From assembly GCF_039654945.1 (NCBI RefSeq), contig NW_027361728.1:91078001-91142000 (forward strand): a stretch of 64,000 nt of DNA, given 5' to 3'. A program made the position numbers and the translations under genes. The notes beneath the pieces were generated by a model that saw only the letters and a list, made by a program, of their open reading frames with translations, made no database searches and was not told the DNA's origin. Of the stretch, positions 2,152 to 64,000 are shown piece by piece (the stretch's first letter is position 1; the number at the start of each line of letters is the position of its first letter). Source of the stretch: Dendrobates tinctorius. Its lineage: Eukaryota.

Positions 2152-3208
2152 ATGTCCAATCCGAGCGGCAATGTAGCGGCGGCTGCCGACGCCAACCCTG
2201 TCGCACCGCCAGGAGGAGGGCCTGTCGCACCGCCCAGAGGGGCACCCACCGCAGTGGTCCCCATCATGCCGCTGTCTATGCCCTACATACCGGGAGCGGC
2301 CTGGCTACCACAGTACTCGGGTGAGTCACATACCCTGAGTGAATTTAAAGAAAGACTGTGCAGCTTGTTTAAAGTTTACCCTCTGTCTGAAGACCAGAAA
2401 GTGAATATCCTGATTGGACAGCTAATGGGTGCAGCACTGAGAGAGGTGAAAGCCTGGCAGGCTACTGATAAAGAGACTGTTGCAAAGGTCCTGGCCAAGC
2501 TGAAGAGCACCTTTGACACCCGTACTGCAGCTGAGATCAAGATGCGGTTCTTTGGCTGTAAACAGAGGGCACAAGACAGTATCAGGGACTATGCCCTCAA
2601 CCTGCAGGAGGCGCTGCGAGCAGTTAAGCAAGTTGATCCTGATAGTGTAAAAGAAGAAGATAAACTGTTGAAGGAGCAGTTCATTGAAGGACTCCTGTCT
2701 AGTACCCACAGGGGGGCAGCTGCGCATCCTAACCATGCAAACCCCTGATCTGAACTTTGCTGATTTCAAGGATAAAGCTATATGGGTACTGCAGGAACCC
2801 ACTGACAGCCGTCCAGCGCCCCAGAGGCGCCTAGCGATCACCTACCATCAGGAAACCACACCTTGTCCTTCCATCCCTGTGGAGGCTGATGCCCAGACCC
2901 TGGATAAAGATCCAACAGCGGAGCTGTGTCTACAAGTCCAGGAGCTGACCAAGGGAATGGCTGCACTTACCAGAACCGTGCAGTCCCTGCAGGAGTCCTC
3001 CAAAGAAAAAGCACAGCTTGCTTCCAGTCCAGAGGATGTCCCGTGGCTCCGGAGGAGGAGAACCCTGCCACTTCGAGGAAGGAACAACAATTGCTATGAC
3101 CAGGACGGACGTCCCATCTGTCGTCGCTGCTACAAGGCAGGTCATCTTGCAAGGTACTGTCCTTTAAACGAGCAACCCCTGGGGCAGAGGGCCAACCCCC
3201 AGGAGTAG
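2152..3208 (+). pseudogene. gag: Gypsy A gag with a frameshift in the G-run near 2710
   Basis: ORFs 2152-2748 and 2684-3208; capsid-like LKEQFIEGL; zinc knuckle [14 protein letters not shown] (CX2CX4HX4C). Confidence 0.9.
3163..3203 (+). promoter_or_regulatory. -1 ribosomal frameshift signal (slippery heptamer plus hairpin)
   Basis: T TTA AAC in gag frame (3163-3169), followed by a CCTGGGG/CCCCAGG stem (3178-3203); the -1 frame is open through to protease LLDTGS. Confidence 0.8.
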
Positions 3209-3243
3209 GTTCAGCAGGCCCAAGGAACTGGAGAGCCAAGTAT

Positions 3244-6200
3244 GTGGGAGGGAGACCGATCCTTCCTGTGGTGATTGATGGCATCCCTATGAACGCTTTG
3301 TTGGACACTGGCTCCCAGGTGACCACTATGCCGTCCATTCTGTATAAGAGGTACTGGGCTGATTCTGAACTCACCCGTGGCCCAACTGATGAACTAACAC
3401 TAGTTGCTAGTAATGGTCATACCTTGCCGCAGATTGGATGCAAGGAAATTACTGTTAAAGTGGGGCGGGTAGAGTTAAAATCTCAAGGTCTGATAATTGT
3501 TGATATTGATCGACATGAATGCAATCCGATGATGACTCTTGGTACAAATGTAATTGAAAACTGTCTGTCCGAGGTTATTGTCTTGTTGCAACAGGTGGCT
3601 GAGACTGCTGGCTCCGGAGAACAACGAGTCCTGCAGAAGGAGATCCGAGCCCTGATGCAAAGGCAACAGGTAGAACTCTTTGGCGGAGAGATTGGCAGCG
3701 TCAGAGTGAGTGATGCTTTCCCCATTGTAATACCCACCAAGAGTGAAATGATGATATGGTGTCGGGCAGCTATAGGCCTTAGAGGGAGGGATTACCAGGC
3801 ATTGGTGGAACCAGTATACTCCGAAAGCAGGCCCACTGTCCTGACAACCAGAGGGGTGGTTGATGTACAAAAAGGGAGAGTACCTGTACGCCTTTTGAAT
3901 TGTGGGGAGGAGGAAGCCACAATACCTCGGTACGCCACAGTTGCTAAGCTGCTCACTGTTAATAATAACTCCTTGCAGGCAGCAGAGCCTTTGGTCTCAT
4001 CCGATCTGGTGGAGGACAATGGCCCTGTGAAACAGCTAGAAGAGTGGTGCCAGCAACTTCAGGTGAGAACTGACTCTACACCTTCATACCAGAGAAATGG
4101 GGTTTACACAGTGACACAGGAGTATGAGCGGGTATTCAGCAAACACCCACTAGATTTTGGGCAGGCAAAAGGGGTTCAACATCATATCCCCACAGGAGAC
4201 CATCCACCCATAAAGGAGAGGTACAGACCTATACCCCCAAAACAGTACCAGTGTGCTAAGAGTATGTTGAGGGAGATGAAGGAGGCTGGCGTTATCAGAG
4301 ACAGTTGTAGCCCCTGGGCAGCTCCCATAGTTTTTGTAAAGAAAAAGGATGGTACCATGAGAATGTGTGTTGATTACAGGGAAAATTAACAACATTACAC
4401 ATAAAGATGCCTACCCATTACCTAGGATTGAGGAATCCTTAGCTGCACTTAAAACTGCTAATTACTTTTCCACCTTGGATCTCACCAGTGGGTATTGGCA
4501 GGTTCCCGTGGCAGAGGCAGATAAGGAGAAAACCGCATTTACCACTCCAATGGGTCTCTGTGAATTCAATTATATGCCATTTGGGCTCTGCACTGCCCCA
4601 GGAACATTTCAACGGCTGATGGAGTACTGCCTGGGACACATGAACTTTGAAACAGTCCTGTTGTACCTGGATGATGTCATTGTTTTCTCCAAAACCTATG
4701 AAGATCACCTGGAACACCTGGCTGAAGTGTTTGAAGCGTTGTCCAATTTTGGCCTGAAGGTGAAGCCCTCCAAATGTCACCTCCTGAAGCCCAAGGTACA
4801 GTACCTCGGTCATGTGGTCAGTGCAGAAGGTGTGGCACCAGATCATGAAAAGGTAACAGTCATCCGGGACTGGCCGAAGCCCAGCAACCTCCATGAAGTT
4901 CGCCAATTCCTTGGACTGGTAGGTTATTACCGAAGATTCATCAAGGGCTTTACTGAAATAGCCACCCCTATGCAAAACCTTCTGGTGGGGCAGTCCAAGA
5001 AGAACAAGCAGAAAAATTCCACCTTTGAATGGACAGAAGAGTTGGAGAGGTCCTTCACCAGATTGAAGATGGCTCTCACAGGTGACGAAGTTCTGGCCTA
5101 CCCAGATTATGAGAAACCCTTTGTGCTATATACAGATGCCAGCAATGTGGGACTAGGGGCGGTACTGTCGCAGGTACAGAATGGAAAAGAAAGCGTGATC
5201 TCCTACGCCAGCAGGAAGTTGCGTCCCACTGAAAGGAACCCCGATAACTACAGTTTTTTCAAGTTGGAGTTCCTTGCCATAGTCTGAACTGTCACCGAAA
5301 GGTTCAAACATTACCTGGCCTCGGCCAAGTTTAAAATCTTCACGGACAACAATCCGTTGACTCACTTGGACACTGCAAAGCTAGGTGCACTGGAACAGCG
5401 ATGGATGTATCTAACTATGAGTTTACCATCAAGTACCGGGCAGGGCACAAGAATGCCAATGCTGATGCGCTGTCCAGAATGCCGAACCTACCAGATGCAG
5501 GAGAAGACCCTGAGGCTCTTGAAGAGATAGAGCTACCTCCCTTCCACCGGCCACTTGCGGCCCAACGTGCTCAAGGAGTGAGAGACAGACGGTCCGGCTT
5601 GAAGGAGGTCACCCTGAATCCTTTGCCCCATCATGACTGGGCAGAAACGCAAGATAGTGACCCTGCAGTCTGCCTGGTGAAGGAGCTGTTGACACGAGCT
5701 GACTCACGTCCAGAGTGGGATGCTCCTGAAGAAACCCAGCAGCTGTGGAAGGATAAGGGTTGGCTGTTCATTTATGAAGGGAAGCTGTGTCGGAGGACTA
5801 TCAATGCCCGCACTCATGAGCTGGTTTGGCAGGTGATAGTCCCAAAGAGAGAGGCATCAATGGTCCTGGAAGCATACCACAATGGAGCTGGACACTTCGG
5901 GTGGAAGAAGTTGGAAACATTGCTCCGAGAGAGGTTCTACTGGGCTGGTATGAGGAAAGCCATTGAGAGGTGGTGCCGGGAGTGTGGACGGTGTAACCTG
6001 CGCAGAAAGGATCGAGACAGTCAGAGAGCTCCCCTGCAACCAATTATCACCAAACAGCCACTGGAGTTTGTAGCCCTGGACCATGTGAAGCTGGTTCCAA
6101 GCCGGTCGGGCTACATCTATGCTCTTACCATTGTGGATCACTACTCAAGATTCCTGGTAGTTGTACCCATCAAAGATCTAACTGCCAGGACAGCAACCAG

Positions 6201-7321
6201 AGCCTTCCAACAGCACTTCTGTAGGCCACATGGGTATCCTGAAAGAGTACTCACAGATCACGGTCCAGCTTTTGAGGCAGAAGTGTTCCATGAGTTCTGC
6301 AACTTGTATGGTTGTAAGAAGATCCGGACAACACCTTATCACCCACAGACCAATGGCATGTGCAAGAAGATGAACCAGGTAGTGATTGATCTACTGAAGA
6401 CTCTGCCCTTGGAGGAGAGGAATCTGAGGCCAGAAAAGTTGCCGGACCTGATAGATCTCTACAACCATATTGCAGTGAACTCTACCAACTTTACTCCAGC
6501 ATACCTGATGAGAGCAAGATCGGGTAGGCTGCCTGTGGATTTGGACATGGGAGTTCTGATGCCTGAAGTAATGTCGCCAGATGCTGACTGGGACAAGGAG
6601 AGGCAGCAGCAGTACAGAAGAGTACAGGAGTGTGTGGAGAAGAATCTGGCCCAGGCAAGACAAAAGCAGGAGAAGCTATACAATCAGAATGCACCTGCTG
6701 TCCCCTTTTCGCCGGGAGAACAAGTCCTCAAAAGGAAGAGGAGGTTGCACAAGCTAGATGATCAATCGGAGGCTGAACCTTATACCATTCTGCCCTCAAA
6801 CTTTGATAATACCACAGTCTGCCTTGTTAGTAAAGATGGTATCCAGGGACCACTTGAAGTTATGCCCTGACCAGTTGAAAGCAAGAGCAAAAGAGTCAGA
6901 TGACATCCAACCTGTAGAGAAAGAAGAGAAGGTTAGCACAGTGCTTGGGGAGTTCCCTGCGAACTGGACTAGAATTAATGATGCAATAGTGGTGCCAGTG
7001 TTATTATTCCCCCAAGTGGAAGCACAGGAGGACGTGACTCGAGAGGATCAGGAAAATCAGGCAGCAGAAGCCACACCAGCAGTGGAGCCAGAGAACCCTC
7101 GCCCTGCCAGTGGTGAACCTGTTGTGCCTATGGTGAGTCCAAGAGTTCCTAGACAGTCACGTATCCCTGTGCCATGTAGAATTACTAGGAGCGTATCTAG
7201 AGCATTACACACTACACCGGTAGTTAGAACCAGACAAACAGTAAGGCCCACTACAGTACCAGTGTTGCGCAGATCCACTCGAACCACACAGGGTGTACTG
7301 CCAGTTAGGTTCCGCATCTAA
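3244..7321 (+). pseudogene. pol: Gypsy A pol (protease, RT, RNase H, integrase), with frameshifts and a stop
   Basis: LLDTGS; YLDD; YTDASNVGLGAVL; HHCC zinc finger and DDE integrase; LRRSTR tail. Breaks near 4381, 5285 (TGA), 5400 and about 6760-6840. Confidence 0.95.
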
Positions 7322-13757: not shown

Positions 13758-15396
13758 CAGTTAAGTCCATATATATTTGGACAGAGACAACATTTTTCTA
13801 ATTTTGGTTCTAGACATTACGACAATGAATTTTAAGCAAAACAATTCAGATGCAGTTGAAGTTCAGACTTTCAGCTTTCATTTGAGCGTATCCACATTAA
13901 AATTGGATGAAGGGTTTAGGAGTTTCAGCTCCTTAACATGTGCCACCCTGTTTTTAAAGGGACCAAAAGTAATTGGACAATTGACTCCAAGGCTATTTCA
14001 TGGGCAGGTGTCTGGGCAATCCCTTTATTATGTCATTCTCAATTAAGCAGATAAAAGGCCTGGAGTTGATTTGAGGTGTGGTGCTTGCATTTGGAAGGTT
14101 TTGCTGTGAAGGAAACAAGCAGTCAAAGGAGCTCTCCATGCAGGTGAAACAATCCATCCTTAAGCTGCAAAAATAGAAAAAAAACCATTGCTACATTAGG
14201 AGTGGCAAAATCTACAGTTTGGTACATTCTTAGAAAGAAAGAAAGCACTGGTGAACTCATCAATGCAAAAAGACCTGGGCGCCCACGGAAGACAACAGTG
14301 GTGGATGATCGCAGAATAATCTCCATGGTGAAGAGAAACCCCTTCGCAACAGTCAACCAAGTGAACAACACTCTCCAGGAGGTAGGTGTATCAATATCCA
14401 AATCTACCATAAAGAGAAGACTGCATGAAAGTAAATACAGAGGGTTAACTGCATGGTGCAAGGCACTCATAAGCATCAAGAATCAAAAGGCTAGACTGGA
14501 CTTTGCTAAAAAACATCTAAAAAAGCCAGCACAGTTCTGGAAGAACATTCTTTGGACAGATGAAACCAAGATTAACCTCTACCAGAATGATGGAAAGAGA
14601 AAAGTATGGCCAAGGCGTGGTACAGCTCATGATCCAAAGCATACCACATCATCTGTAAAACACAGCAGAAGCAGTGTGATGGCTTGGGCATGCATGGCTG
14701 CCAGTGACACTGGGTCACTAGTGTTTATTGATGATGCGACACAGGACAGAAGCAGCCGAATGAATTCTGAAGTATTCAGAGCCATACTGTGTGCTCAGAT
14801 CCAGCCAATTGCAGCCAAACTGATTGGTCGTCGTTTCATACTACAGAAGGACAATGACCCAAAACATAAAGCCAAAGCAACCCAGGAGTTTATTAAAGCA
14901 AAGAAGTGGAATATTCTTGAATGGCCAAGTCAGTCACCTGATCTCAACCCAATTGAGCATGCATTTCACTTGTTAAAGACTAAACTTCTGACAGAAAGGC
15001 CCACAAACAAACAGCAACTGAAAACCACCACAGTGAAGGCCTGGCAGAGCATCAAAAAGGAGGAAACACAGCGTCTTGTGATGTCCATGAGTTCAAGACT
15101 TCAGGCAGTCATTGTCAACAAAGGGTTTTCAATCAAGCACTAGAAATGAACATTTTATTTACAATTATTTAATCTGTCCAATTACCTTTGGTCCCTTTAA
15201 AAACAGGGTGGCACATGTTAAGGAGCTGAAACTCCTAAACCCTTCATCCAATTTTAATGTGGATACCCTCAATTGAAAGCTGAAAGTCTGAACTTCAACT
15301 GCATCTGAATTGTTTTGTTTAAAATTCATTGTGGTAATGTCTAGAACCAAAATTAGAAAAATGTTGTCTCTGTCCAAATATATATGGACCTAACTG
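13758..15396 (+). mobile_element. Tc1-family transposon, full length
   Basis: ~220-bp TIRs CAGTTAAGTCC.../...GGACCTAACTG; TA target duplication. Confidence 0.95.
14202..15143 (+). pseudogene. Tc1 DD34E transposase, N-terminus damaged
   Basis: [28 protein letters not shown]; upstream start lost and a stop near 14174. Confidence 0.9.
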
Positions 15397-16430: not shown

Positions 16431-19400
16431 CCCCAGTGCCCTGTCGACCCTAACCACCTTAGCCCCATAATACCCCCATCCTCTCACATTCACCCTCCAG
16501 TGCCCTGTCTCCCTCCCCCACAACACCCCCATGATTTCATATTCAGCCCCCAGTGCCCTGTCCCCTTTCCCACCTCAGCCACCACAATACCCCCATCCTC
16601 TCACATTTACCCCCCAGGGAACATGACATGCCTATCAATCTAATACATTTTATCCCCACTTACCAATGAAGTTTGAAGCAGGACCAGGAAGTATCTGAGT
16701 GAAATGGAGGTGAGCACTAGGACTAAGCGTGTGCCAATCCCAGCTTGCACTGAAGTGAAGAAAACTGCAGCCTGGGAGAAGCTCCTGAGGTCAGTCAGCA
16801 CTGTACAGTGCAGGAGGGAGATTCTGCAACTGGCCACTGTGCTACCAGTGTGCAGAATCTCTGTCATACAGGGGAGCAGGCAATGTGACGTCATGTGACG
16901 GGGCCCGGGGCAAAAGCCCCCCTGCCCCCCCAGTAGCTATGCTACTGATCAGCTGTGAATGACTGGGATACTCCAAGAACTGTGAAAGAAGTCAAGAGTT
17001 TCCTAGGGTTTTCAGGCTACTACCGCCCCTTCATCACTCATTTTGCACAAATAGCAGAACCCCTTACAGAACTGCTACAAGGTTGCCCTAGAGAACACTA
17101 AGACAGAAGACTTCCAATTGATTGGTCTGAATGACAAGAAACTGCCTTTCAGATGCTGAAAAGCTTACTAACTTCCCCTCCAATTGTGGCGTATCCTGAC
17201 TACTGCCACCCTTTCCTTCTCTACACGGATGCCAGCTATCAAGGCCTCGGGGCGGTACTATCACAAGTCCAGAATGGCAAAGAGAGAGTCATTGCTTATG
17301 CCAGCCGAAGCTTGAGAGGCGCTGAGAAGAACGATAACAATTATAGATCATTCAAGTTAGAGCTGCTAGCTTTTGTGTGGGCCGTCACCGAGAGGTTCAA
17401 AGATTATCTCGCGGCTACCCCCTTCACCGTTTACACAGACAATAATCCTCTTGCTCACCTTAATACTGCACAGCTAGGTGATCTGGAGAAGGGATGGGCT
17501 TCAAGATTGGCGAGTTTCTGCTTTGACATTAAGTATCGCAGTGGCAAGATCAACATCAATGCAGATGTGTTACCTCATTTGCCCATATTAGAAGATCATC
17601 CTGAGGAAGATCTGTGGGAAGATGTTGAGATGCCTCCCTTCTATCAAAGATTTGCTACACAGAATGCCACTGCTGCTACACAAACTAATGAAGTCTCTCA
17701 ACCGAAACCGGATTTTTCCCAAGATCCATTGAGATGGCAAACCCTTCAAACGGAGTCTCGTGTCTTAGGAGAGATCTACGAATACCTGACTACTGGGAGA
17801 ATACCTGTCCGACGATGCAGACGATGTCCTGATGTTGAGCTTAATCGTCTATGGAGACAGCACAAAAGACTCTTCATTCAAAAGAGCTTGATCTTGCACA
17901 ATTCCCTGGACCCTGTTTCAGGTGAAAGATTACATTAGATTCTAATCCCACGGCGAGATGCCAGAATTGTTCTCGATGCCTACCACGACCAGTCTGGGCA
18001 CTTTGGCGTACACAAAACTGAAGCTACCATACGCCAACGCTTTTACTGGATTGGGATGCGTTCAGATATAGAGAATTGGTGTAGCGCATGTTCAGTGTGC
18101 AACCTCACTAAAGGTGGTAAGAAAGATGCCAGAGCTCCTCTTCATCCAATCCATTCTCAGAAACCGAACAAACTAGTTGCTCTTGATCACATGAAGCTAG
18201 CTCCAACTCGTTCGGGCTGCATGTATGCCCTTACCATGGTGGATCACTGTACTAAGTGGGTTGTCGTTATACCGGTGAAAGACCTTACAGCTCGGACTAC
18301 AGCTATCACCTTTTACCACGAATATGTGAGACATTACGGTTGCCCTGAAGCAGTCCTCACAGACCGTGGACCTGCCTTTGAGTCCCAACTATTTCAAGAA
18401 CTCTGCCAATTCCATGGGTGCAAGAAGCTAAGAACCACTGCCTATTATCCAAAAGGGAATGGCCTTTGTGAGAAAGTCAACCAGACCTTCATCAATATGC
18501 TGCGAACAGCATCTGTTACCAAACAAGCTGAATGGCCTCAACTACTTGATGAGTTAGTGGAAACCTACAACTATACCTTCCATTGTTCTACCGGATACTC
18601 GCCATATTACTTGATGTTTGGAAAACAAGCTCAACTCCCAAAATATCGTGCTTTGGGAATCCAGGTTCCTGATGTGATCAATCCCCGGCTCTGCACCTAG
18701 ATAATACCATGCACTTTGCGTATTGTTTGCATTATTTTCCAATGCAGCCGTGGACTTATTATAGACTGGTGGTTGCCACTAATTGCCTTTCCAGAGCCTT
18801 TTATATGGATGATAGTATATTGCGGAAAGAGACTCTATTTCATGTTTTGCAGTGGTTTATTGCATATTGTTCTCCCATATATCTGAGCATGCTTGCCTAA
18901 GTGTTGCTTTACATTACCTGTATATTTCCTTCTTTAGTAGTCCTCCACTTTTGCAGTCGCCGAGGACGGCTTATCTTCAGAAGGGAAGTATGTAGTGACC
19001 CAATCCAGAGTGTGTCCGTCCCTTTAAGTAATACTGAATTGTGAGTAGCATCAGTACAGTACTGCTCACTCTCTAACTGGTCCTCTACATTATTTGTGAG
19101 CTGTAATTTTCCCTTTCTAGTCACTTCCATTTTAGATGCAATGCATTTCTCATTTCCTGTGTTCTGTCGCCATCTAATGGTGAAAGTGTACAATGACTCA
19201 GTTATTGTTTTGTAAGGATCTGAGATGTGAATTTGGTCTCCTATTGGCCAGCTCCTAGTCACATGGTCAATAGGAGGAGCTGTTTTCCAGGCAAGTCTAG
19301 AATGTTCTTTAGTCTGAGGGATGCCTTCAGGGAGAGCAGAACATATGTGGAGGATGTTTTACCTCAAGATCTCCTGCAGGCCTAAAAGCCTGAGTTCCCT

Positions 19401-34025: not shown

Positions 34026-36519
34026 AGAGTACATACTCACCGTCACTTGTCACTTTGATCCCCGAAGCCATTGTCGCCTGAGGAATAAATATCAAAATAA
34101 AAAAACACCAATATACTTACCCCGATCTGCAGAAGTCCACGAGAGTCCCACGTCGATCTTGCGTGGAGAACAGCAGCATCAGCTGATGCTACCGTTCTCA
34201 ACCAGCTCCAGGAATACAATGACGGAAGGTAGGTATCCTTCCGCACTGTATTCCTCTTAGCATGTATGTAGTATGTATGTAGTATGCATGTAGTATGTAG
34301 CATGTATGTAGTATGTATGTAGTATGTATGTAGCAAGTATGCAGTATGTATGTTGCATGTATGTAGCATGTAGTATATATGTAGTATGTATGTTACATGT
34401 AATATATATGTAGTATATATGTAGTATGCATGTTGCATGCATGTAGTATATATGTTGTATGTATGTTGCATGCATGTAGTATATATGTATTATGTATGTA
34501 GTATGTATGTTGCATGTATGTAGCATGTAGCATGTATGTTGCATGTAGTATATATGTAGTATGTATGTTACATGTAGTATATATGTAGTATGCATGTTGC
34601 ATGTATGTAGCATGTATTTTTTTTTTTTTACATTCAACACATTAGCCGGATGATGGGACTACTACTGTCCCATCATTGGCTAATGTGTCAATCACTGTCA
34701 TGGTAGCAGGCATCGCCCGATGGGACTTGTAGTCCCATCGGACGATGCCTGCACAGACCCCCGGAGCCTGCACAGACCACCGGCAGGCCGGCACAGCCCC
34801 CCAGCAGGCCGGTACAGACCCCCGGCAGGCTGCACAGACCCCCGGGCAGTCGGCACAGACCCCCGGAGCCTGCTCAGACCCCCGGGCAGTCGGCACAGAC
34901 CCCTGGCAGGCCGGTACAGACCCTCGGCAGTCCGCACAGACCCCCGGGCAGTCCGCACAGACCCCCGGGCAGTCAGCACAGACCCCCGGCAGACATGCAC
35001 AGCCCCCCAAAAGGCCCGTACAGACCCCAGAGAGGCTGTACAAGGCAAAAATAGGGTTTTTCTTATTCCGATACCAGAAGTCCCATAGACTTGAATGGGA
35101 CTTCCGGTATCGGAATCGGCGATACCCGATATTTTTTTTAGATCGGCCGATCCATTCCGATCCGATACTTTTAAGTATCGGACGGTATCGCTGAACACTA
35201 GTCATGAAGGGAAGCTATGTCTGTAAGAGGGAGAAGGGACTCAGAGAGTGATTGTAAATTGAGGTGTTTGAGATTCCTGCGTGGGTGAGCGAGTTTATCG
35301 AGCGGGGGTTGCACAGTAGGAGAGGAGAGGGAAGAGAATGTCAGTAGGTTGTGGTCAGACAGGGGGAGGGGTGTGTTATTGAGATTAGTGAGAGAACAGA
35401 GACGAGTGAGGATAAGGTCCAGTGTGTGACCATCTTTGTGAGTGGCCGCAGAGGACCATTGAGTGAGGCCAAGGGAAGCCGTGAGCGATAGAAGTTTAGA
35501 GGCAGCCAGGGTGGAATTGTCAATGGGGATGTTGAAGTCGCCCATGATGATGGTGGGGATGTCAGCAGAAAGGAAATGGTGTAACCAGGTGGTGAAGTGG
35601 TCGAGAAAGGTGGAAATTGCTAGTTCTGGGGGGCGGTAGATCACAGCCAGTTGGAGGGTGGAGGGGGAATAGATGCGGACAGAGTGCACCTCGAACGAGG
35701 GAAGAGTAGCGGAGCGTGGCAGAGGAATTGGGGTAGAGGAGCAGGTATCAGACAGGAGCAAGCCAACTCCTCCACAACATTTGTTGCTGGGGCGAGGGGT
35801 GTGAGAGAGATGGAATCCGCCATAGGAAAGCGCAGCTGGAGAGGCTGTGTCAGAGGGAGTGAGCCAGGTTTCAGTGATGGCGAGGAAGGAGAGTTTCTTG
35901 GTGATAAATAGGTCATGGATAAATGATAGCTTGTTGCATACAGAGCGTTCGTTCCACAGGGCTCCAGGTAAGGGGGTTGAGGGAGTGGGGGCTGGATGAA
36001 TGGGTATGAGGCTATCATGGTTGCAAGGACGTGTAGAGGATTGTGGCAGAGTGGTAGAAGTGAGTGTAGGGATGTGTTGAGGAGGATAATTCGACAAATG
36101 TCATACCTGCAGGGATTTATAGGGAAGCACTGGAAAATGATGTTAGCCATCTATCTGATGCTTCAGTGGTGTGGGAAATGATGGTGGATACGCTTATTTA
36201 ATTTTTTGTCAAATGCAAATTAAATCTCAAAATGTTGAAACTGCAAATTTCAGAAAATTTTACTCAAACTCGATCCTTCACAGATTGATCCAGCATCTCT
36301 AGTCTCCTTACTTCCCAGACATTTACAGACTGTAAAAGGAAGAGTGACTGATACAGAGAAGTAGTCATGCCCCTGAGCTATAGTTTTTGAGATGTGTTGC
36401 TGTCATTAATTTAAATGACTTAATTTTTTTCAAATTATATTGAAAATATCTGACTTTTAGTGTCTGATCTGTGTTCTATATTCTCAATAATTTGTTGTGA
36501 ATAAAATATGGCTATTAGA

Positions 36520-41432: not shown

Positions 41433-44400
41433 CTATGTGTCATCAGGGGAAGGTGGGACAAAATCCTTGGAAACCCATGCGTGGTTCATTTTAATGAAGG
41501 TTAGATCATCCACATTTTGGGTTGACAGACGGGTCCTTTTTTCTGTCAGGATTGATCCAGCTGCACTGAAGACTCTTTCCGATAGCACACTTGCAGCTGG
41601 GCAAGCGAGCTCCTGTAAGGCATATTGGGCCAATTCAGGCCAGGTGTCCAGTTTAGCGGCCCAATAGTCAAAGGGGAATGACCTGTGTGGGAGAACATCG
41701 ATATGGGAGGAAAAGTAGTTTGTAACCATAGTTGACAACTGCTGTCTCCTGTCACTTTCCATCGATGCAGTATTACCAGTTGTGTGAGCGGTATTTGAAA
41801 AATCAGTCCACAACATTGTCATGAAACCCCTATCTCCAACGCCACTTCTGCTGTGTGCACCACGAACACCTCTGCCAAGCTGCCCCCGGCCCGTACGGCT
41901 CGTGTGAGAACCATCACCGCTGCTGTGTGCTGGGAATGCCTCAAGCAACCGATTTACCAGAGTTGCTTGTTTATTAGCCAATATTAGGTCAAGGTTCTCC
42001 TGTGGCATGATGTTTTGTAATTTGCCTTTATAGCGTGGATCCAGGATGCTGGCCAACCAGTAGTCGTCATCGATCATCATTTTGGCAATGCGGGGGTCCC
42101 TTTTTAGGATCCGCAAGGCATAATCTGACATGTGGGCCAATGTTCCCGGTGTCAATGATGCACTGCGAGTGCTGGGTGGAGGAGCATTTTCTGGCAAATC
42201 CACATCCCTCCACTCACGCACAAACCCTGTACCTGACCTTGCCACGCCAACATTTTCACTTGCCCCACGAGATGCATCCTCCTCCCCTAAGTAATCATCC
42301 CCATCATCATCCTCCTCTTCTTCCTCCACCTCGTCCAGGAGAGGTCCCTGAGCAGACAATGGCTGAATGTCATCAAGGATTCCCTCCTCCTCTTCCTCCT
42401 CATCAACATTGGCTGCAGACGCCTGCTCCTTAAGGTGCGTCAAAGTTTGCATGAGCAGACGCATAAGTGGGATGCTCATGCTTAGGATGGCGTCGTCTGC
42501 GCTTACCAGCCGTGTGCATTCCTCAAAACACTGAAGGACTTTACAGAGGTCTTTCAGCTTCGACCACTGCACACCTGTCAACTCCATGTCTGCTCTCAAA
42601 GTGCCTGGCCGTGTATCCTCCCACAAATGCATTATGGCCTGCCTCTGCTCGCACAGCCGCTCCACCATGTGCAGGGTGGAGTTCCACCTTGTTGCAATGT
42701 CGATAATGAGGCGGTGGTTGGGAAGGTGGAGCAATCGCTGCAGCTTCTGCATACGAACGGAGTGTACAGGCGACCGGCGGATGTGCGCGCACAGTCTTCG
42801 CACCTTCTGGAGCAGGGCTGTTAACTCCAGATAATTTTTGAGGAAGCACTGCACCACCAGGTTCAAAGTGTGAGCCAAGCAAGGTATGTGGCTGAGTTTT
42901 GAAAGGGCTATGGCAGCTACAAAATTACGGCCGTTATCACTAACTACCTTGCCTGCCTCAAGATGTACACTGCCCAGCCATGACTCAGTTTGTCGCTTCA
43001 AGTACTCGGCCAGCACCTCGGCGGTGTGTCTGTCGCCCAAACACATCATCTGCAACACAGCCTGCTGACGCTTTCCACTAGCTGCTCGATAGGGGGACAC
43101 ATCGTGTGCAACAGTGGCAGCTGCAGATGGAGCGCTCGTACGACTGCGCTCTGTGGACGAGCTTTCGCTTCTGGAGGAGGAGGAGGAGGAGGAGGAGGGT
43201 CGAACGCCTACATCCAACTGTTTCCTATACCGTGGGCTAGGCAGCACAGTCCCACCACCGCTGTCCCCTGTGGACCCTGCATCCACCACATTAACCCAGT
43301 GCGCAGTGATGGACACGTAACGGCCCTGGCCATGCCGACTGGACCATGCATCAGTTGTGAGGTGCACCTTTCCGCTCACTGACTGCTTGAGTGCATGGAC
43401 AATGCGGTCTTTCTCATGATGGTGGAGGGCTGGGATGGCTTTGCGAGAGAAGAAGTGGCGACTGGGTAGGTCATAGCGTGGTACTGCATAGGCCATGAGT
43501 TCGCGGAAAGCTGTGCTTTCCACCAACCGAAAGGGCATCATCTCAAACGAGATTAGTTTGGCAATGTGGGCGTTCAAACCCAGTGTACGCGGATGAGAGA
43601 CTGAGTACTTTCTTGACCTACTCATAGTGTCTGGGAGGGTGAGCTGGACTTGAGAGCTGCATATGGTGGAAGTAGCGGTGGACAGGGCGGACTGAGAGAG
43701 GGTTGATGATGGTGATGGAGTTGGTGTTCTTTCTGATGGCCTAGAATCAGTCTTTCGTTGATATAACAGTGGGATTCCCTGACTGCTGTGGCCTTGCAAC
43801 GACACCTCAACATTTGCTGCTGTGCTAACCGGTGGGCTTACAGTGGGGGAAACAATGTAGCGTTGCTGACTACCTTCGTTGTGATCAGTTGCACATGTGG
43901 CACTTGAGGTTTGGTGTTGTGTCCACGCTTGCAAGTGCATGCTGGTTAAATGTCTAAGCATGCAACTGGTATTCAAATTTTTCAGATTTTTCCCTCGGCT
44001 AAAGGTCTTTGCGCACTTCTTACAGATAACCTTGGCCTGATCATGAGGATTTTGGTCAAAAAAGTGCCACACTGCACTCTTCCTACTTTGGCAGACATTT
44101 TGCGGCCTAGCACGCTGTGATCTTTTGACCCTCTGGACAAGCTGTCCAGCAACTCTTTTGATGTTTGGAACCTGTCTTTGGAGTGCTCAGGGCCTGCCAG
44201 ATAACAGCTGTTGCGATGTCGATGTCTGCTGTGGATGCTCCTCATCTGAGCTATTGGAAGCAGCACCCTCTTCCCCCAATGGATGCCAATCTGGGTCAAC
44301 AACTGGGTCATCCATCACCTCCTCTTCTATGTCATGTGCACCTTCCTCTGTGTCACCGTGTATGGTGGTATAGTGTGCGGGAAGGGGCACCTGAGTCTCA

Positions 44401-57302: not shown

Positions 57303-58924
<1,622 letters not shown>

Positions 58925-61222: not shown

Positions 61223-62724
61223 TAAATGATGATTTTTGAGGAAAAAATGTAATTTTTAATTTTCACGGTTAAGTACATTCCTTGATGGGTCTAGTTTCCA
61301 AAATGGAGTTACTTGTGGGGGTTTTGCACTGTTTAGGTACATCAGGGACTTTCCAAAATGTGACATGGTGTCTAAACTCAATTCCAGCCAATTTTGTGTT
61401 GAAAAAGTCAATCGGTACTCCTTTCCTTCCAAGCTCTGTCATGCGCCTAATCAGTGGTTTACCCCATATATGGGATATCAAAATACACAGGACAAATTAC
61501 AGAACAACTTTTGGGGTCCAGTTTCCCCTGTTACCCTCAGGAAAATAAAAAATTGGGGGCAAAAATATCATTTTTGTGGAAAGAATATGATTTTTTATTT
61601 TCACGTCTGTACGTTCTAAACTTCTGTGAAGCACTTGGGGGTTCAAAGTGCTCACCATGTATCTAGGTAAGTTCCTTGGGGGATCTATTTTCCAAAATGG
61701 GGTCACTTGTGGGGGTTTCCACTGTTTAGGTACATCAGGAGCTCTCCAAATGCGACATGGCATCTGCTCTCGATTCCAGCCAATTTTACATTCAAAACCT
61801 CAAATGGTGCTCCTTCCCTTCCGAGCCCTGCCGTGCACCTAAAGAGTGGTCTTCCTCTACCCATGGGGCATCAGTGTACTCAGGAGAAATTGCATAGCCA
61901 ATATTATGGTTCATTTTCTCCTGATACTCTTGACAAAATAAAAAAAATTGTGTCCAAAGTAAAAAATTTTGAAAAAAAGTTAAATGCTCATTTTTTCCTT
62001 CCATATTGCTTCAATTCTTGGGAATCATCTAAAGGGTTAATAAACTTTTTGAATGTGGTTTTGAACACCTTCAGGGGTGCAGTTTTTAGAATGGGGTCAC
62101 TTTTGGATATTCTCTGTCATATAGGCCTACAAAGTGACTTCAAATATATGGTGGTCCCTAAAAAAATGGAAAAATAAGAAATTGTTGGTCAAGTTCTAAC
62201 CCTTAATAACTTCCTAACAAAAAAATGTTTCAAAAACTGTGCTGATGTCAAGTAGACATGTGGGAAATGTTATTTATTAACTATTTTGTGTGACATAATG
62301 CTCTGATTTTGAACATAAAAATTAGAAATTGTGAAATTTTCAAATTGTTTGCCAAATTTAATTTTTTTTCTCAAATAAACACAAGAAATTTTGAAGAAAC
62401 TTTACCACTATAATAACGTATACAATACAGTATGTCAGGAAAAAAAGCATCTCAGAATCAGCGGGATCCATTGAAGTGTTCCAGAGTTATAACCACATAA
62501 AGTGACAGTGGTCAGATTGTCGTTTCAGGTGATTGTTCAATACAAAAAAAAAATAAAAAACAAATCTGAACTGAGAAAAGTAAGTTAATGTGTATGCACA
62601 ATGTAAGTGCATATTTACACATGACCATTAACCAGAGAAAGCAAAAAGCAAAAAACACACAAATATCCTGAACTAAAAGTAAAAAATATACTGCAAATAA
62701 TGCATAAAGGTAATAATAATAATG

Positions 62725-62803
62725 AGGGTATTTAGTAAACATAATTTTGATCAAAATAATGTACAAGCCATCCCGCCACGTCACGGCAACCCTTGTGGGA
62801 CAG
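62725..62803 (-). ncRNA. Candidate HDV-like ribozyme, copy 1
   Basis: P1 CUGUCCC/GGGAUGG, J1/2 ACA, P2 AGGGU(U)/ACCCU, P3 GCC/GGC, L3 GUGACGU, P4 ACAUUAUUUUGAUCAAAAUUAUGU, J4/2 ACUAA. Confidence 0.6.
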
Positions 62804-63141
62804 TCCCTACTCTAGTATTTAAAACCTTTTCACTTGCCAAGTGGCGTGAATGTGAATAAGGGTCGAGCGGCTGAACCACTTGTAACAGCTTAGGCCAGAC
62901 TGGATGGCTTTCCCAGCTCAGAAAGAGGGCGGTCACACCCATATATGCACTGAATGCACAATGAAATGAATAAAAAAAAAATCTGAACTGAGAAAAGTAA
63001 GTTAATGTGTATGCACAATGTAAGTGCATATTAACACATGACCATTAACCAGAGAAAGCAAAAAGCAAAAAACACACAAATATCCTGAACTAAAAGTAAA
63101 AAATATACTGCAAATAATGCATAAAGGTAATAATAATAATG

Positions 63142-63220
63142 AGGGTATTTAGTAAACATAATTTTGATCAAAATAATGTACAAGCCATCCCGCCACGTCA
63201 CGGCAACCCTTGTGGGACAG
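63142..63220 (-). ncRNA. Candidate HDV-like ribozyme, copy 2
   Basis: Same core as copy 1, 417 bp away. Confidence 0.6.
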
Positions 63221-63710
63221 TACCTACTCTAGTATTTAAAACCTTTTCACTTGCCAAGTGGCGTGAATGTGAATAAGGGTCGAGCGGCTGAACCACTTGT
63301 AACAGCTTAGGCCAGACTGGATGTACATTATTGTACATTATTTTGATCAAAATTATGTTTACTAAATACCCTCATTATTATTATTACCTTTATGCATTAT
63401 TTGCAGTATATTTTTTACTTTTAGTTCAGGATATTTGTGTGTTTTTTGCTTTTTGCTTTCTCTGGTTAATGGTCATGTGTTAATATGCACTTACATTGTG
63501 CATACACATTAACTTACTTTTCTCAGTTCAGATTTGTTTTTTATTCATTTCATTGTGCATTCAGTGCATATATGGGTGTGACCGCCCTCTTTCTGAGCTG
63601 GGAAAGCCATCCAGTCTGGCCTAAGCTGTTACAAGTGGTTCAGCCGCTCGACCCTTATTCACATTCACTCCACTTGGCAAGTGAAAAGGTTTTAAATACT
63701 AGAGTAGGGA

Positions 63711-63789
63711 CTGTCCCACAAGGGTTGCCGTGACGTGGCGGGATGGCTTGTACATTATTTTGATCAAAATTATGTTTACTAAATACGCT
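63711..63789 (+). ncRNA. Candidate HDV-like ribozyme, copy 3 (inverted arm; P2 weakened by ACCCU>ACGCU)
   Basis: P1 63711-63717/63740-63746, P3 63727-63729/63737-63739, putative catalytic C 63779. Confidence 0.5.
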
Positions 63790-64000
63790 CATTATTATTA
63801 TTACTACCTTTATGCATTATTTGCAGTATATTTTTTACTTTTAGTTCAGGATATTTGTGTGTTTTTTGCTTTTTGCTTTCTTCGATTGTTCAATACAAGC
63901 AGTCAAGTGTGTGCACTACTTCTGAATATTATGCGATTGTATCCTGTAATTTTTAAGTTTTCTCTATGTCTTCCTACTTTTATCTCTAGCACCTTCTTTT

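Follow-up and report, generated by a model that had tools for sequence, protein, structure and literature searches.

The 64,000-nt stretch of Dendrobates tinctorius DNA analyzed here (contig NW_027361728.1 of RefSeq assembly GCF_039654945.1, positions 91,078,001 to 91,142,000 of the forward strand; hereafter the window) contains a 1,338-bp insert made of 417-nt units that are joined in tandem and then inverted. The original prediction for this DNA, made from the sequence alone, described a 1.34-kb retrozyme-like insertion with a 15-bp target-site duplication (TSD), no credible open reading frame (ORF), and a ribozyme of the type found in hepatitis delta virus (HDV) and CPEB3 in every unit. Sequence reading and repeat analysis placed the insert at 62546-63883, bracketed by perfect TSDs that match at 15 of 15 positions (Table 1). 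The direct repeats with a 417-nt period (62547-62846 versus 62964-63263) were 98% identical, and the inverted arms (62710-63183 versus 63331-63804; 474 nt) were 99% identical. The longest ORF of the insert spans 90 codons from a GTG start, and an 82-residue ORF in the GC-rich half of the unit had no homologue in a word search of 5.8 billion proteins or a HMMER search of 1.8 billion representatives. The insertion, its TSD, its tandem-then-inverted units, and its lack of a credible ORF were thus as first described.

Table 1. Features of the insert, its HDV-like cores, and the surrounding window (window coordinates).
Feature	Position	Strand	Remarks
Left TSD	62531-62545	.	GATTGTTCAATACAA; identical 15/15 to right TSD
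Right TSD	63884-63898	.	GATTGTTCAATACAA; identical 15/15 to left TSD
Left arm	62546-63323	-	RNA sense on minus strand; monomer pieces L1, L2, L3
Piece L1	63221-63323	-	Left arm; unit 315-417
Piece L2	62804-63220	-	Left arm; unit 1-417
Piece L3	62546-62803	-	Left arm; unit 1-258
Filler	63324-63330	.	7 nt, TACATTA, at head-to-head arm junction; repeats part of neighboring GTACATTATT
Right arm	63331-63883	+	RNA sense on plus strand; monomer pieces R1, R2
Piece R1	63331-63710	+	Right arm; unit 38-417
Piece R2	63711-63883	+	Right arm; unit 1-173
Core copy 1	62725-62803	-	Complete HDV-like core; C1 = 62803; predicted cut between 62804 and 62803
Copy 1 P1	62797-62803 with 62768-62774	-
Copy 1 J1/2	62794-62796	-
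Copy 1 P2	62789-62793 with 62725-62729	-
Copy 1 P3	62785-62787 with 62775-62777	-
Copy 1 L3	62778-62784	-
Copy 1 P1.1	62782 with 62767	-	G22 with C37
Copy 1 P4	about 62736-62765	-
Copy 1 J4/2	62730-62735	-	Candidate catalytic C69 = 62735
Core copy 2	63142-63220	-	Complete HDV-like core, identical to copy 1; predicted cut between 63221 and 63220
Core copy 3	63711-63789	+	HDV-like core with P2 broken by C77G (3' strand ACCCU to ACGCU)
Truncated core	63331-63372	+	5'-truncated fragment U38-U79 (P4, J4/2, and P2 3' strand only) at start of right arm
Gypsy-type retrotransposon	2152-7321	+	Long-terminal-repeat (LTR) element interior; protease, reverse transcriptase, RNase H, and integrase split over several ORFs
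Tc1/mariner transposase ORF	14202-15143	+	Sleeping-Beauty-like; first of two
RNase H fragment	17153-17938		Second such fragment
LINE ORF	35198-36097	-	Long interspersed nuclear element (LINE); apurinic-type endonuclease domain
hAT-type transposase ORF	41433-44072	-	Uninterrupted, 879 aa; BED zinc finger and hAT dimerization domain
Tc1/mariner transposase ORF	57640-58617	+	Sleeping-Beauty-like; second of two

Architecture of the insertion

Unit positions are numbered from C1, the first nucleotide after the proposed cut site. In the sense of the HDV-like motif, the 3' ends of both arms lie at the flanks and the 5' ends face each other at 63323/63331, an orientation that identifies the motif-bearing strand as the RNA sense. 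The arms stop at unequal unit positions (~252 and ~168), and the insert has neither poly(A) nor a fixed 3' tail, only an 8-nt A-run at its left end; the outermost 6-8 nt of the left arm are A residues on the plus strand and do not match the unit. Tandem units are joined without spacers, the predicted +1 nucleotide starts neither arm, and the right arm begins at U38, directly 3' of the P1/P1.1 strand of the motif. Six internal differences distinguish the five monomer pieces and every one is a singleton, which indicates that the insertion is young and was templated by a uniform RNA, whether circular or a homogeneous multimer. The layout of the arms is as expected for cDNA synthesis primed on the RNA by each of the two nicked target strands.

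Other origins were rejected on structural grounds. We rejected snap-back (fold-back) at the P4 palindrome as the source of the inversion because the arms do not mirror each other at the junction, where unit position 315 adjoins position 38. A plain satellite or segmental duplication was rejected because of the TSD and the head-to-head arms, and a tRNA-derived short interspersed nuclear element (SINE) because ARAGORN returned no match. Tandem Repeats Finder reported no array in the insert, probably because each strand holds fewer than two full head-to-tail units. Based upon the TSD, the tandem-plus-inverted arms, the uniform template, and a very abundant repeat family (see below), we conclude that the insert is very probably a mobile, Penelope-type, retrozyme-like retro-insertion, and this part of the original prediction was upheld.

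Every unit of an animal non-LTR retrozyme contains, by definition, a type I hammerhead. Retrozymes are related to Penelope pseudo-LTRs, abound in amphibians, and are believed to be mobilized by Penelope-like elements (Cervera and de la Pena 2020; bioRxiv 10.64898/2026.07.22.740005). Like them, the present insert is non-coding, is flanked by a TSD, and consists of tandem units of a few hundred nucleotides. Unlike them, it has no hammerhead, as direct reading of both strands found no CUGANGA core, and an HDV-like fold would take that role, a fold that would cut at its own 5' edge if active and for which self-ligation is not known. Because a hammerhead is absent, the insert lies outside retrozymes as defined. 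Penelope-like elements and their non-autonomous relatives have as their hallmark partial tandems with an adjacent inverted, 5'-truncated copy; the tandem/inverted layout, the 5' truncation, and a TSD longer than 10 bp are all shared by the present insert, whereas an ORF with reverse transcriptase and GIY-YIG domains, a hammerhead, and a 30-40-bp tail are missing from it.

An HDV-like double pseudoknot in the repeat unit

On the sense strand, the motif runs GGGA^CUGUCCC (proposed cut and P1 5' strand), ACA (J1/2), AGGGU (P2 5' strand), U, GCC (P3 5' strand), GUGACGU (L3), GGC (P3 3' strand), GGGAUGG (P1 3' strand), C (P1.1), P4, C69-UAAAU (J4/2), and ACCCU (P2 3' strand). Read directly, the order P1-J1/2-P2-P3-L3-P3'-P1'-P1.1-P4-J4/2-P2' is that of the nested double pseudoknot of HDV, and all of the helices and linkers listed originally are present. 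P1 (CUGUCCC/GGGAUGG) has 7 pairs, 2 of them G-U; P2 (AGGGU/ACCCU) has 5 pairs; P3 (GCC/GGC) has 3 pairs; L3 has 7 nt; P4 is an AU-rich, imperfect hairpin; and J4/2 (CUAAAU) has 6 nt. C69 opens J4/2 right after P4 and is followed by UAA, giving the C-N-A-A pattern, and is the candidate catalytic cytosine. P1.1 could form a single Watson-Crick pair (G22-C37), swapped relative to HDV, together with U21.U38; a U.U second pair in P1.1 is known from fast natural HDV-like ribozymes.

The 36-nt core from P1 to P1' occurs three times exactly in the window by pattern search (62768-62803 and 63185-63220 on the minus strand, 63711-63746 on the plus strand), with 0 occurrences expected. Two of the three 79-nt cores are complete and identical, although copy 2 is preceded by GGUA instead of GGGA. 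The third has a broken P2, and the claim that each complete unit bears the motif therefore holds for two cores and fails for one. Pattern search, BLAST, and nhmmer detected no further copies or relatives of the unit within the window, and descriptor scans found no second HDV-like family there.

Among known ribozymes, the closest parallels are with HDV, CPEB3, and the L1TcRz ribozyme of the trypanosome L1Tc element. With CPEB3 and HDV, the motif shares the order of the double pseudoknot, a 7-pair P1, a 3-pair G-C P3, a 7-nt L3 with an equivalent of G25, and C-N-A-A in J4/2; the L3 of CPEB3 also ends in ACGU. It differs from them in having C1-G rather than G1.U, G20 rather than U20, a swapped P1.1, a longer J4/2, a weak P4, and no Rfam match. 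The motif thus has HDV topology and lacks two canonical signature features, G1.U and U20. In R2 ribozymes, the sequence is free apart from the catalytic C and four positions.

L1TcRz, which cleaves co-transcriptionally in vitro and occurs in L1Tc/NARTc/SIDER elements, has G-C pairs in P1 oriented opposite to those of HDV and R2. Its P1.1 is a single pair that can be disrupted by a G at -1 that extends P1, and thus its position 38 is C and its +1 nucleotide pairs with G+37. As L1TcRz is described in published text, the present motif resembles it in the C1-G pair, the C after P1, and the single swapped P1.1 pair. Moreover, reverse transcriptase stops at G+37/C+38 of L1TcRz, and the right-arm cDNA of the present insert ended at U38, directly 3' of the equivalent stop, a post-hoc coincidence of ~1 in 100 that stands beside three other passages in which the core was read through. 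In contrast to the present motif, L1TcRz sits once, at the 5' end of a LINE or SINE, where it doubles as a promoter, and its host belongs to a different kingdom.

Chance expectation and folding energy

A loose HDV descriptor gave ~3 matches per 128 kb when the window was shuffled and is unimpressive alone. The strict descriptor demanded 7 pairs in P1, Watson-Crick pairing in P3, 7-8 nt in L3, a P1.1 pair, at least 5 pairs in P2 and 6 in P4, and a C-N-A-A no more than 2 nt away from P2'. It produced 4 matches in 247 shuffles, corresponding to ~1e-4 per 417-nt unit over both strands, a figure that makes a chance match look rarer than it is because the descriptor was composed after the candidate had been seen and many such families were examined. 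Descriptor scans of the window recovered core copies 1 and 2. A chance match of this topology is unlikely and is not the natural expectation. In energy calculations, P1, P3, and P4 together contribute -12.2 kcal/mol and P2, treated as a duplex, adds about -6.5 kcal/mol, as compared with -14.5 kcal/mol for the best nested fold, so the double pseudoknot is predicted to be energetically competitive.

The only Rfam family with any match was a bacterial RNA motif, COG2908, which gave a weak three-stem alignment at 62766-62872 (minus strand) and 63642-63748 (plus strand) with an E value of 0.045 and 19.8 bits. This identity was taken as spurious, as the motif is bacterial and the score falls far under the gathering threshold of 58.7. 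In the pairing that it proposes, a GC-rich block upstream of the HDV-like motif can pair with GGCU just after P1.

Abundance and variation of the repeat family

The region 62300-62990 was aligned at 80% likeness to contigs of four public runs from two frog organisms (A and B); all four runs consist of contigs, in which RNA ends are not visible and summed depth does not equal copy number. From one DNA run alone, 7,681 contigs aligned, and tandem junctions belonging to other copies were seen in both organisms. The family of 417-nt units is very abundant. Runs that may derive from RNA also contain the unit.

Variation in the family is compatible with conservation of the fold. First, variation of 5% or more in the large DNA run affected none of the 79 core positions, as compared with ~12 of the 338 positions outside the core (P of roughly 0.06), and summed depth was highest in the core bins. 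Second, a variant common in organism B carries four core substitutions, namely C9U in J1/2, U46C at an internal mismatch of P4, A11G in P2, which turns an A-U pair into G.U, and G20U in L3, which restores the canonical HDV nucleotide. All four leave the helices intact, an outcome with an estimated chance of 0.03-0.06 for four random substitutions. The share of depth taken by the U20 variant is ~3% in the DNA run of organism A and 34-67% in the runs of organism B. Third, the family consensus has U80, which adds a sixth pair to P2, where the present lineage has C. Several organism-B contigs with A11G (runs X17 and X19) terminate at precisely 62728, which is 3 nt before the partner position, U79, where a change to C would be compensatory. 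A conserved, GC-rich block of 160 nt lies upstream of the motif.

Searches elsewhere added no relatives. The P3-L3-P1' core matched seven loci in a metagenome scan (L001-L007), all on unrelated GC-rich or other contigs without the rest of the motif, and these were rejected as chance matches. Two Ranitomeya variabilis loci (L008 and L009; 75 kb), retrieved via hAT-like proteins, contained no unit copy and no match to the HDV descriptor.

A possible delta-type counterpart of retrozymes

In the explanation that we favor, a uniform multimeric or circular RNA was copied into DNA from both nicked target strands, as happens when Penelope-like elements and their non-autonomous retrozyme passengers insert. 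Each unit would carry a hepatitis-delta-type double pseudoknot with C1-G at the cut site and a single swapped G-C pair as P1.1, and this fold would cleave tandem transcripts on the 5' side of C1 (GGGA^CUGUCCC), releasing RNAs of unit length that have 5'-OH and 2',3'-cyclic-phosphate ends. A host RNA ligase could circularize these RNAs, and a Penelope-type reverse transcriptase supplied in trans would generate tandem DNA from them, either by repeated circuits of the template or by jumping from one template to another. In this scheme, we infer a circular 417-nt RNA and its mobilization in trans. We judge the chances of this whole explanation, HDV-type ribozyme included, to be evenly balanced, and give the same weight to each side of the narrower question of whether the fold, as read from its sequence, is or was a working self-cleaving ribozyme. 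With G at position 20 of L3 and a P2 shortened to 5 pairs, the present lineage would probably be a poor or slow cutter at best. The insert may nevertheless work like both a retrozyme and an HDV-like ribozyme, although it lacks the hammerhead of the former and two signature features of canonical forms of the latter.

Animal retrozymes and Penelope-like elements have been tied to hammerheads, and the known sources of HDV-like ribozymes are LINE-type elements, CPEB3, and deltaviruses. According to a 2019 review, hammerheads are always present in pseudo-LTRs, and HDV-like ribozymes belong to R2, L1Tc, RTE, Baggins, and some SINEs. Our literature search turned up no report of a delta-type ribozyme within a retrozyme or Penelope-like element. 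More tentatively, and with somewhat less than an even chance of being right, we propose that poison-frog genomes hold a large family of Penelope-dependent 'delta-retrozymes', tandem non-coding elements in which an L1Tc-type HDV-like ribozyme, in place of a hammerhead, frees RNAs of unit length that may be circular. If true, delta-type ribozymes would be linked for the first time with Penelope-type retrotransposition, the ribozyme module of retrozyme- and Penelope-type elements would be interchangeable, and active HDV-like sequence space would extend to C1-G and a swapped P1.1. Small RNAs, possibly circular, would also give vertebrate genomes a reservoir of delta-type ribozymes, with implications for the origin of the ribozymes of deltavirus-like agents. 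Even with an inactive fold, the locus remains a clear-cut case of a passenger RNA inserted by priming on both DNA strands.

Alternative explanations

The most serious alternative, plausible enough although we lean against it, is a ribozyme-free, Penelope-type passenger that was copied by a Penelope-like reverse transcriptase, for example of Naiad type, with an HDV-like fold that arose by chance or has another role, which could be recognition by the reverse transcriptase or activity as a DNA promoter element. Several results that weigh against a working ribozyme fit this explanation. First, Rfam 15 gave no HDV, CPEB3, or hammerhead match on 2 kb at E values up to 10, no ribozyme family matched the 101-nt core with lax filters at E values up to 10, and a scan of the window at the Rfam gathering score gave no ribozyme match; the comparison with HDV and CPEB3 models that the original prediction called for thus came out negative. 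Second, both signature features are replaced: C1 pairs with G36 in place of the G1.U cleavage-site wobble, and L3 keeps G25 but has G at position 20, which eliminates the U20/G25 reverse wobble. In CPEB3, a G1A change nearly abolishes cleavage, and in the antigenomic HDV ribozyme, a G/G combination at the equivalent of U20/G25 keeps activity but is 470-fold slower. Third, the G20 form is the abundant one, making up ~97% of depth in the organism-A DNA run. Fourth, Penelope-like elements of the Naiad and Chlamys clades lack hammerheads, and yet they and their non-autonomous relatives produce head-to-tail and inverted insertions in multiple copies, so the architecture alone demands no ribozyme. 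Finally, nested folds were ordinary, with z-scores from -1.6 to +0.8, a statistic that is uninformative here because pseudoknots lie outside the fold model; the tuning of the strict descriptor noted above points in the same direction.

Further features of the motif also count against cleavage. P4 contributes only -2.2 kcal/mol by itself and J4/2 is 6 nt long, and when upstream sequence is included, the best nested fold pairs GGGA with the UCCC of P1. One of the three cores is mutated and was not recovered by descriptor scans, and no compensatory double change was seen in what were per-position counts only. There may also be another reason for conservation of the core, which may double as, or instead be, a promoter element. 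L3 and the 3' strand of P3 spell TGACGTGG at 62776-62783 (minus strand) and in other copies, a sequence that we take to be a CRE/UPRE-like DNA site.

Four observations are harder to reconcile with a ribozyme-free passenger, namely the rarity of the strict topology by chance, the sparing of all helices by observed variants, one of which brings back canonical U20, the lower variability of the core than of the rest of the unit in the DNA run, and the occurrence of C1-G with a single swapped P1.1 pair in the experimentally active L1TcRz. Of the predicted HDV/CPEB3-type ribozyme in every unit, the topology is therefore real, unlikely by chance, and compatible with the variation, but assignment to that class is opposed by the Rfam results and the loss of G1.U and U20.

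An improbable alternative is a SINE-like element that depends on a LINE, carries an HDV-like ribozyme at its 5' end in the manner of R2, RTE, or L1Tc, and was inserted by twin priming of a LINE reverse transcriptase. HDV-like ribozymes in mobile elements have so far been known only from LINE-type elements and their SINEs, and the window has a LINE endonuclease ORF (35198-36097). However, such an element would not be expected to lack poly(A) or a fixed 3' tail, to have arms ending at different unit positions (~252 and ~168), to join its units in tandem without spacers, or to start neither arm at the predicted +1, and the layout agrees instead with published Penelope-type insertions. It is highly improbable that the HDV-like reading is wrong and that a self-cleaving RNA of another or unknown class lies elsewhere in the GC-rich half of the unit, as the conserved 160-nt block and the alternative pairings shown by the COG2908 match might suggest, given that neither strand has the hammerhead core and that Rfam gave no twister, pistol, hatchet, or hairpin match.

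Surroundings of the insert

The left flank of the insert (62444-62516) belongs to a different, extremely abundant repeat, whose summed contig depth in the DNA run peaks at ~3e5. The sequences of hundreds of contigs depart from that of the window at 62450/62471 and 62516/62518, so that the insertion lies ~15 bp past the end of another repeat copy. No Penelope-like ORF with reverse transcriptase and GIY-YIG domains was present among the scanned window ORFs of at least 150 aa. The window is otherwise rich in transposons, including a Gypsy-type pol, hAT, Tc1/mariner, and a LINE endonuclease (Table 1). The best relatives of the 879-aa hAT ORF are in Ranitomeya variabilis and R. imitator (72-81% over parts), with more in other dendrobatid frogs, in keeping with a poison-frog host, and this element, with its uninterrupted ORF, may have been recently active.

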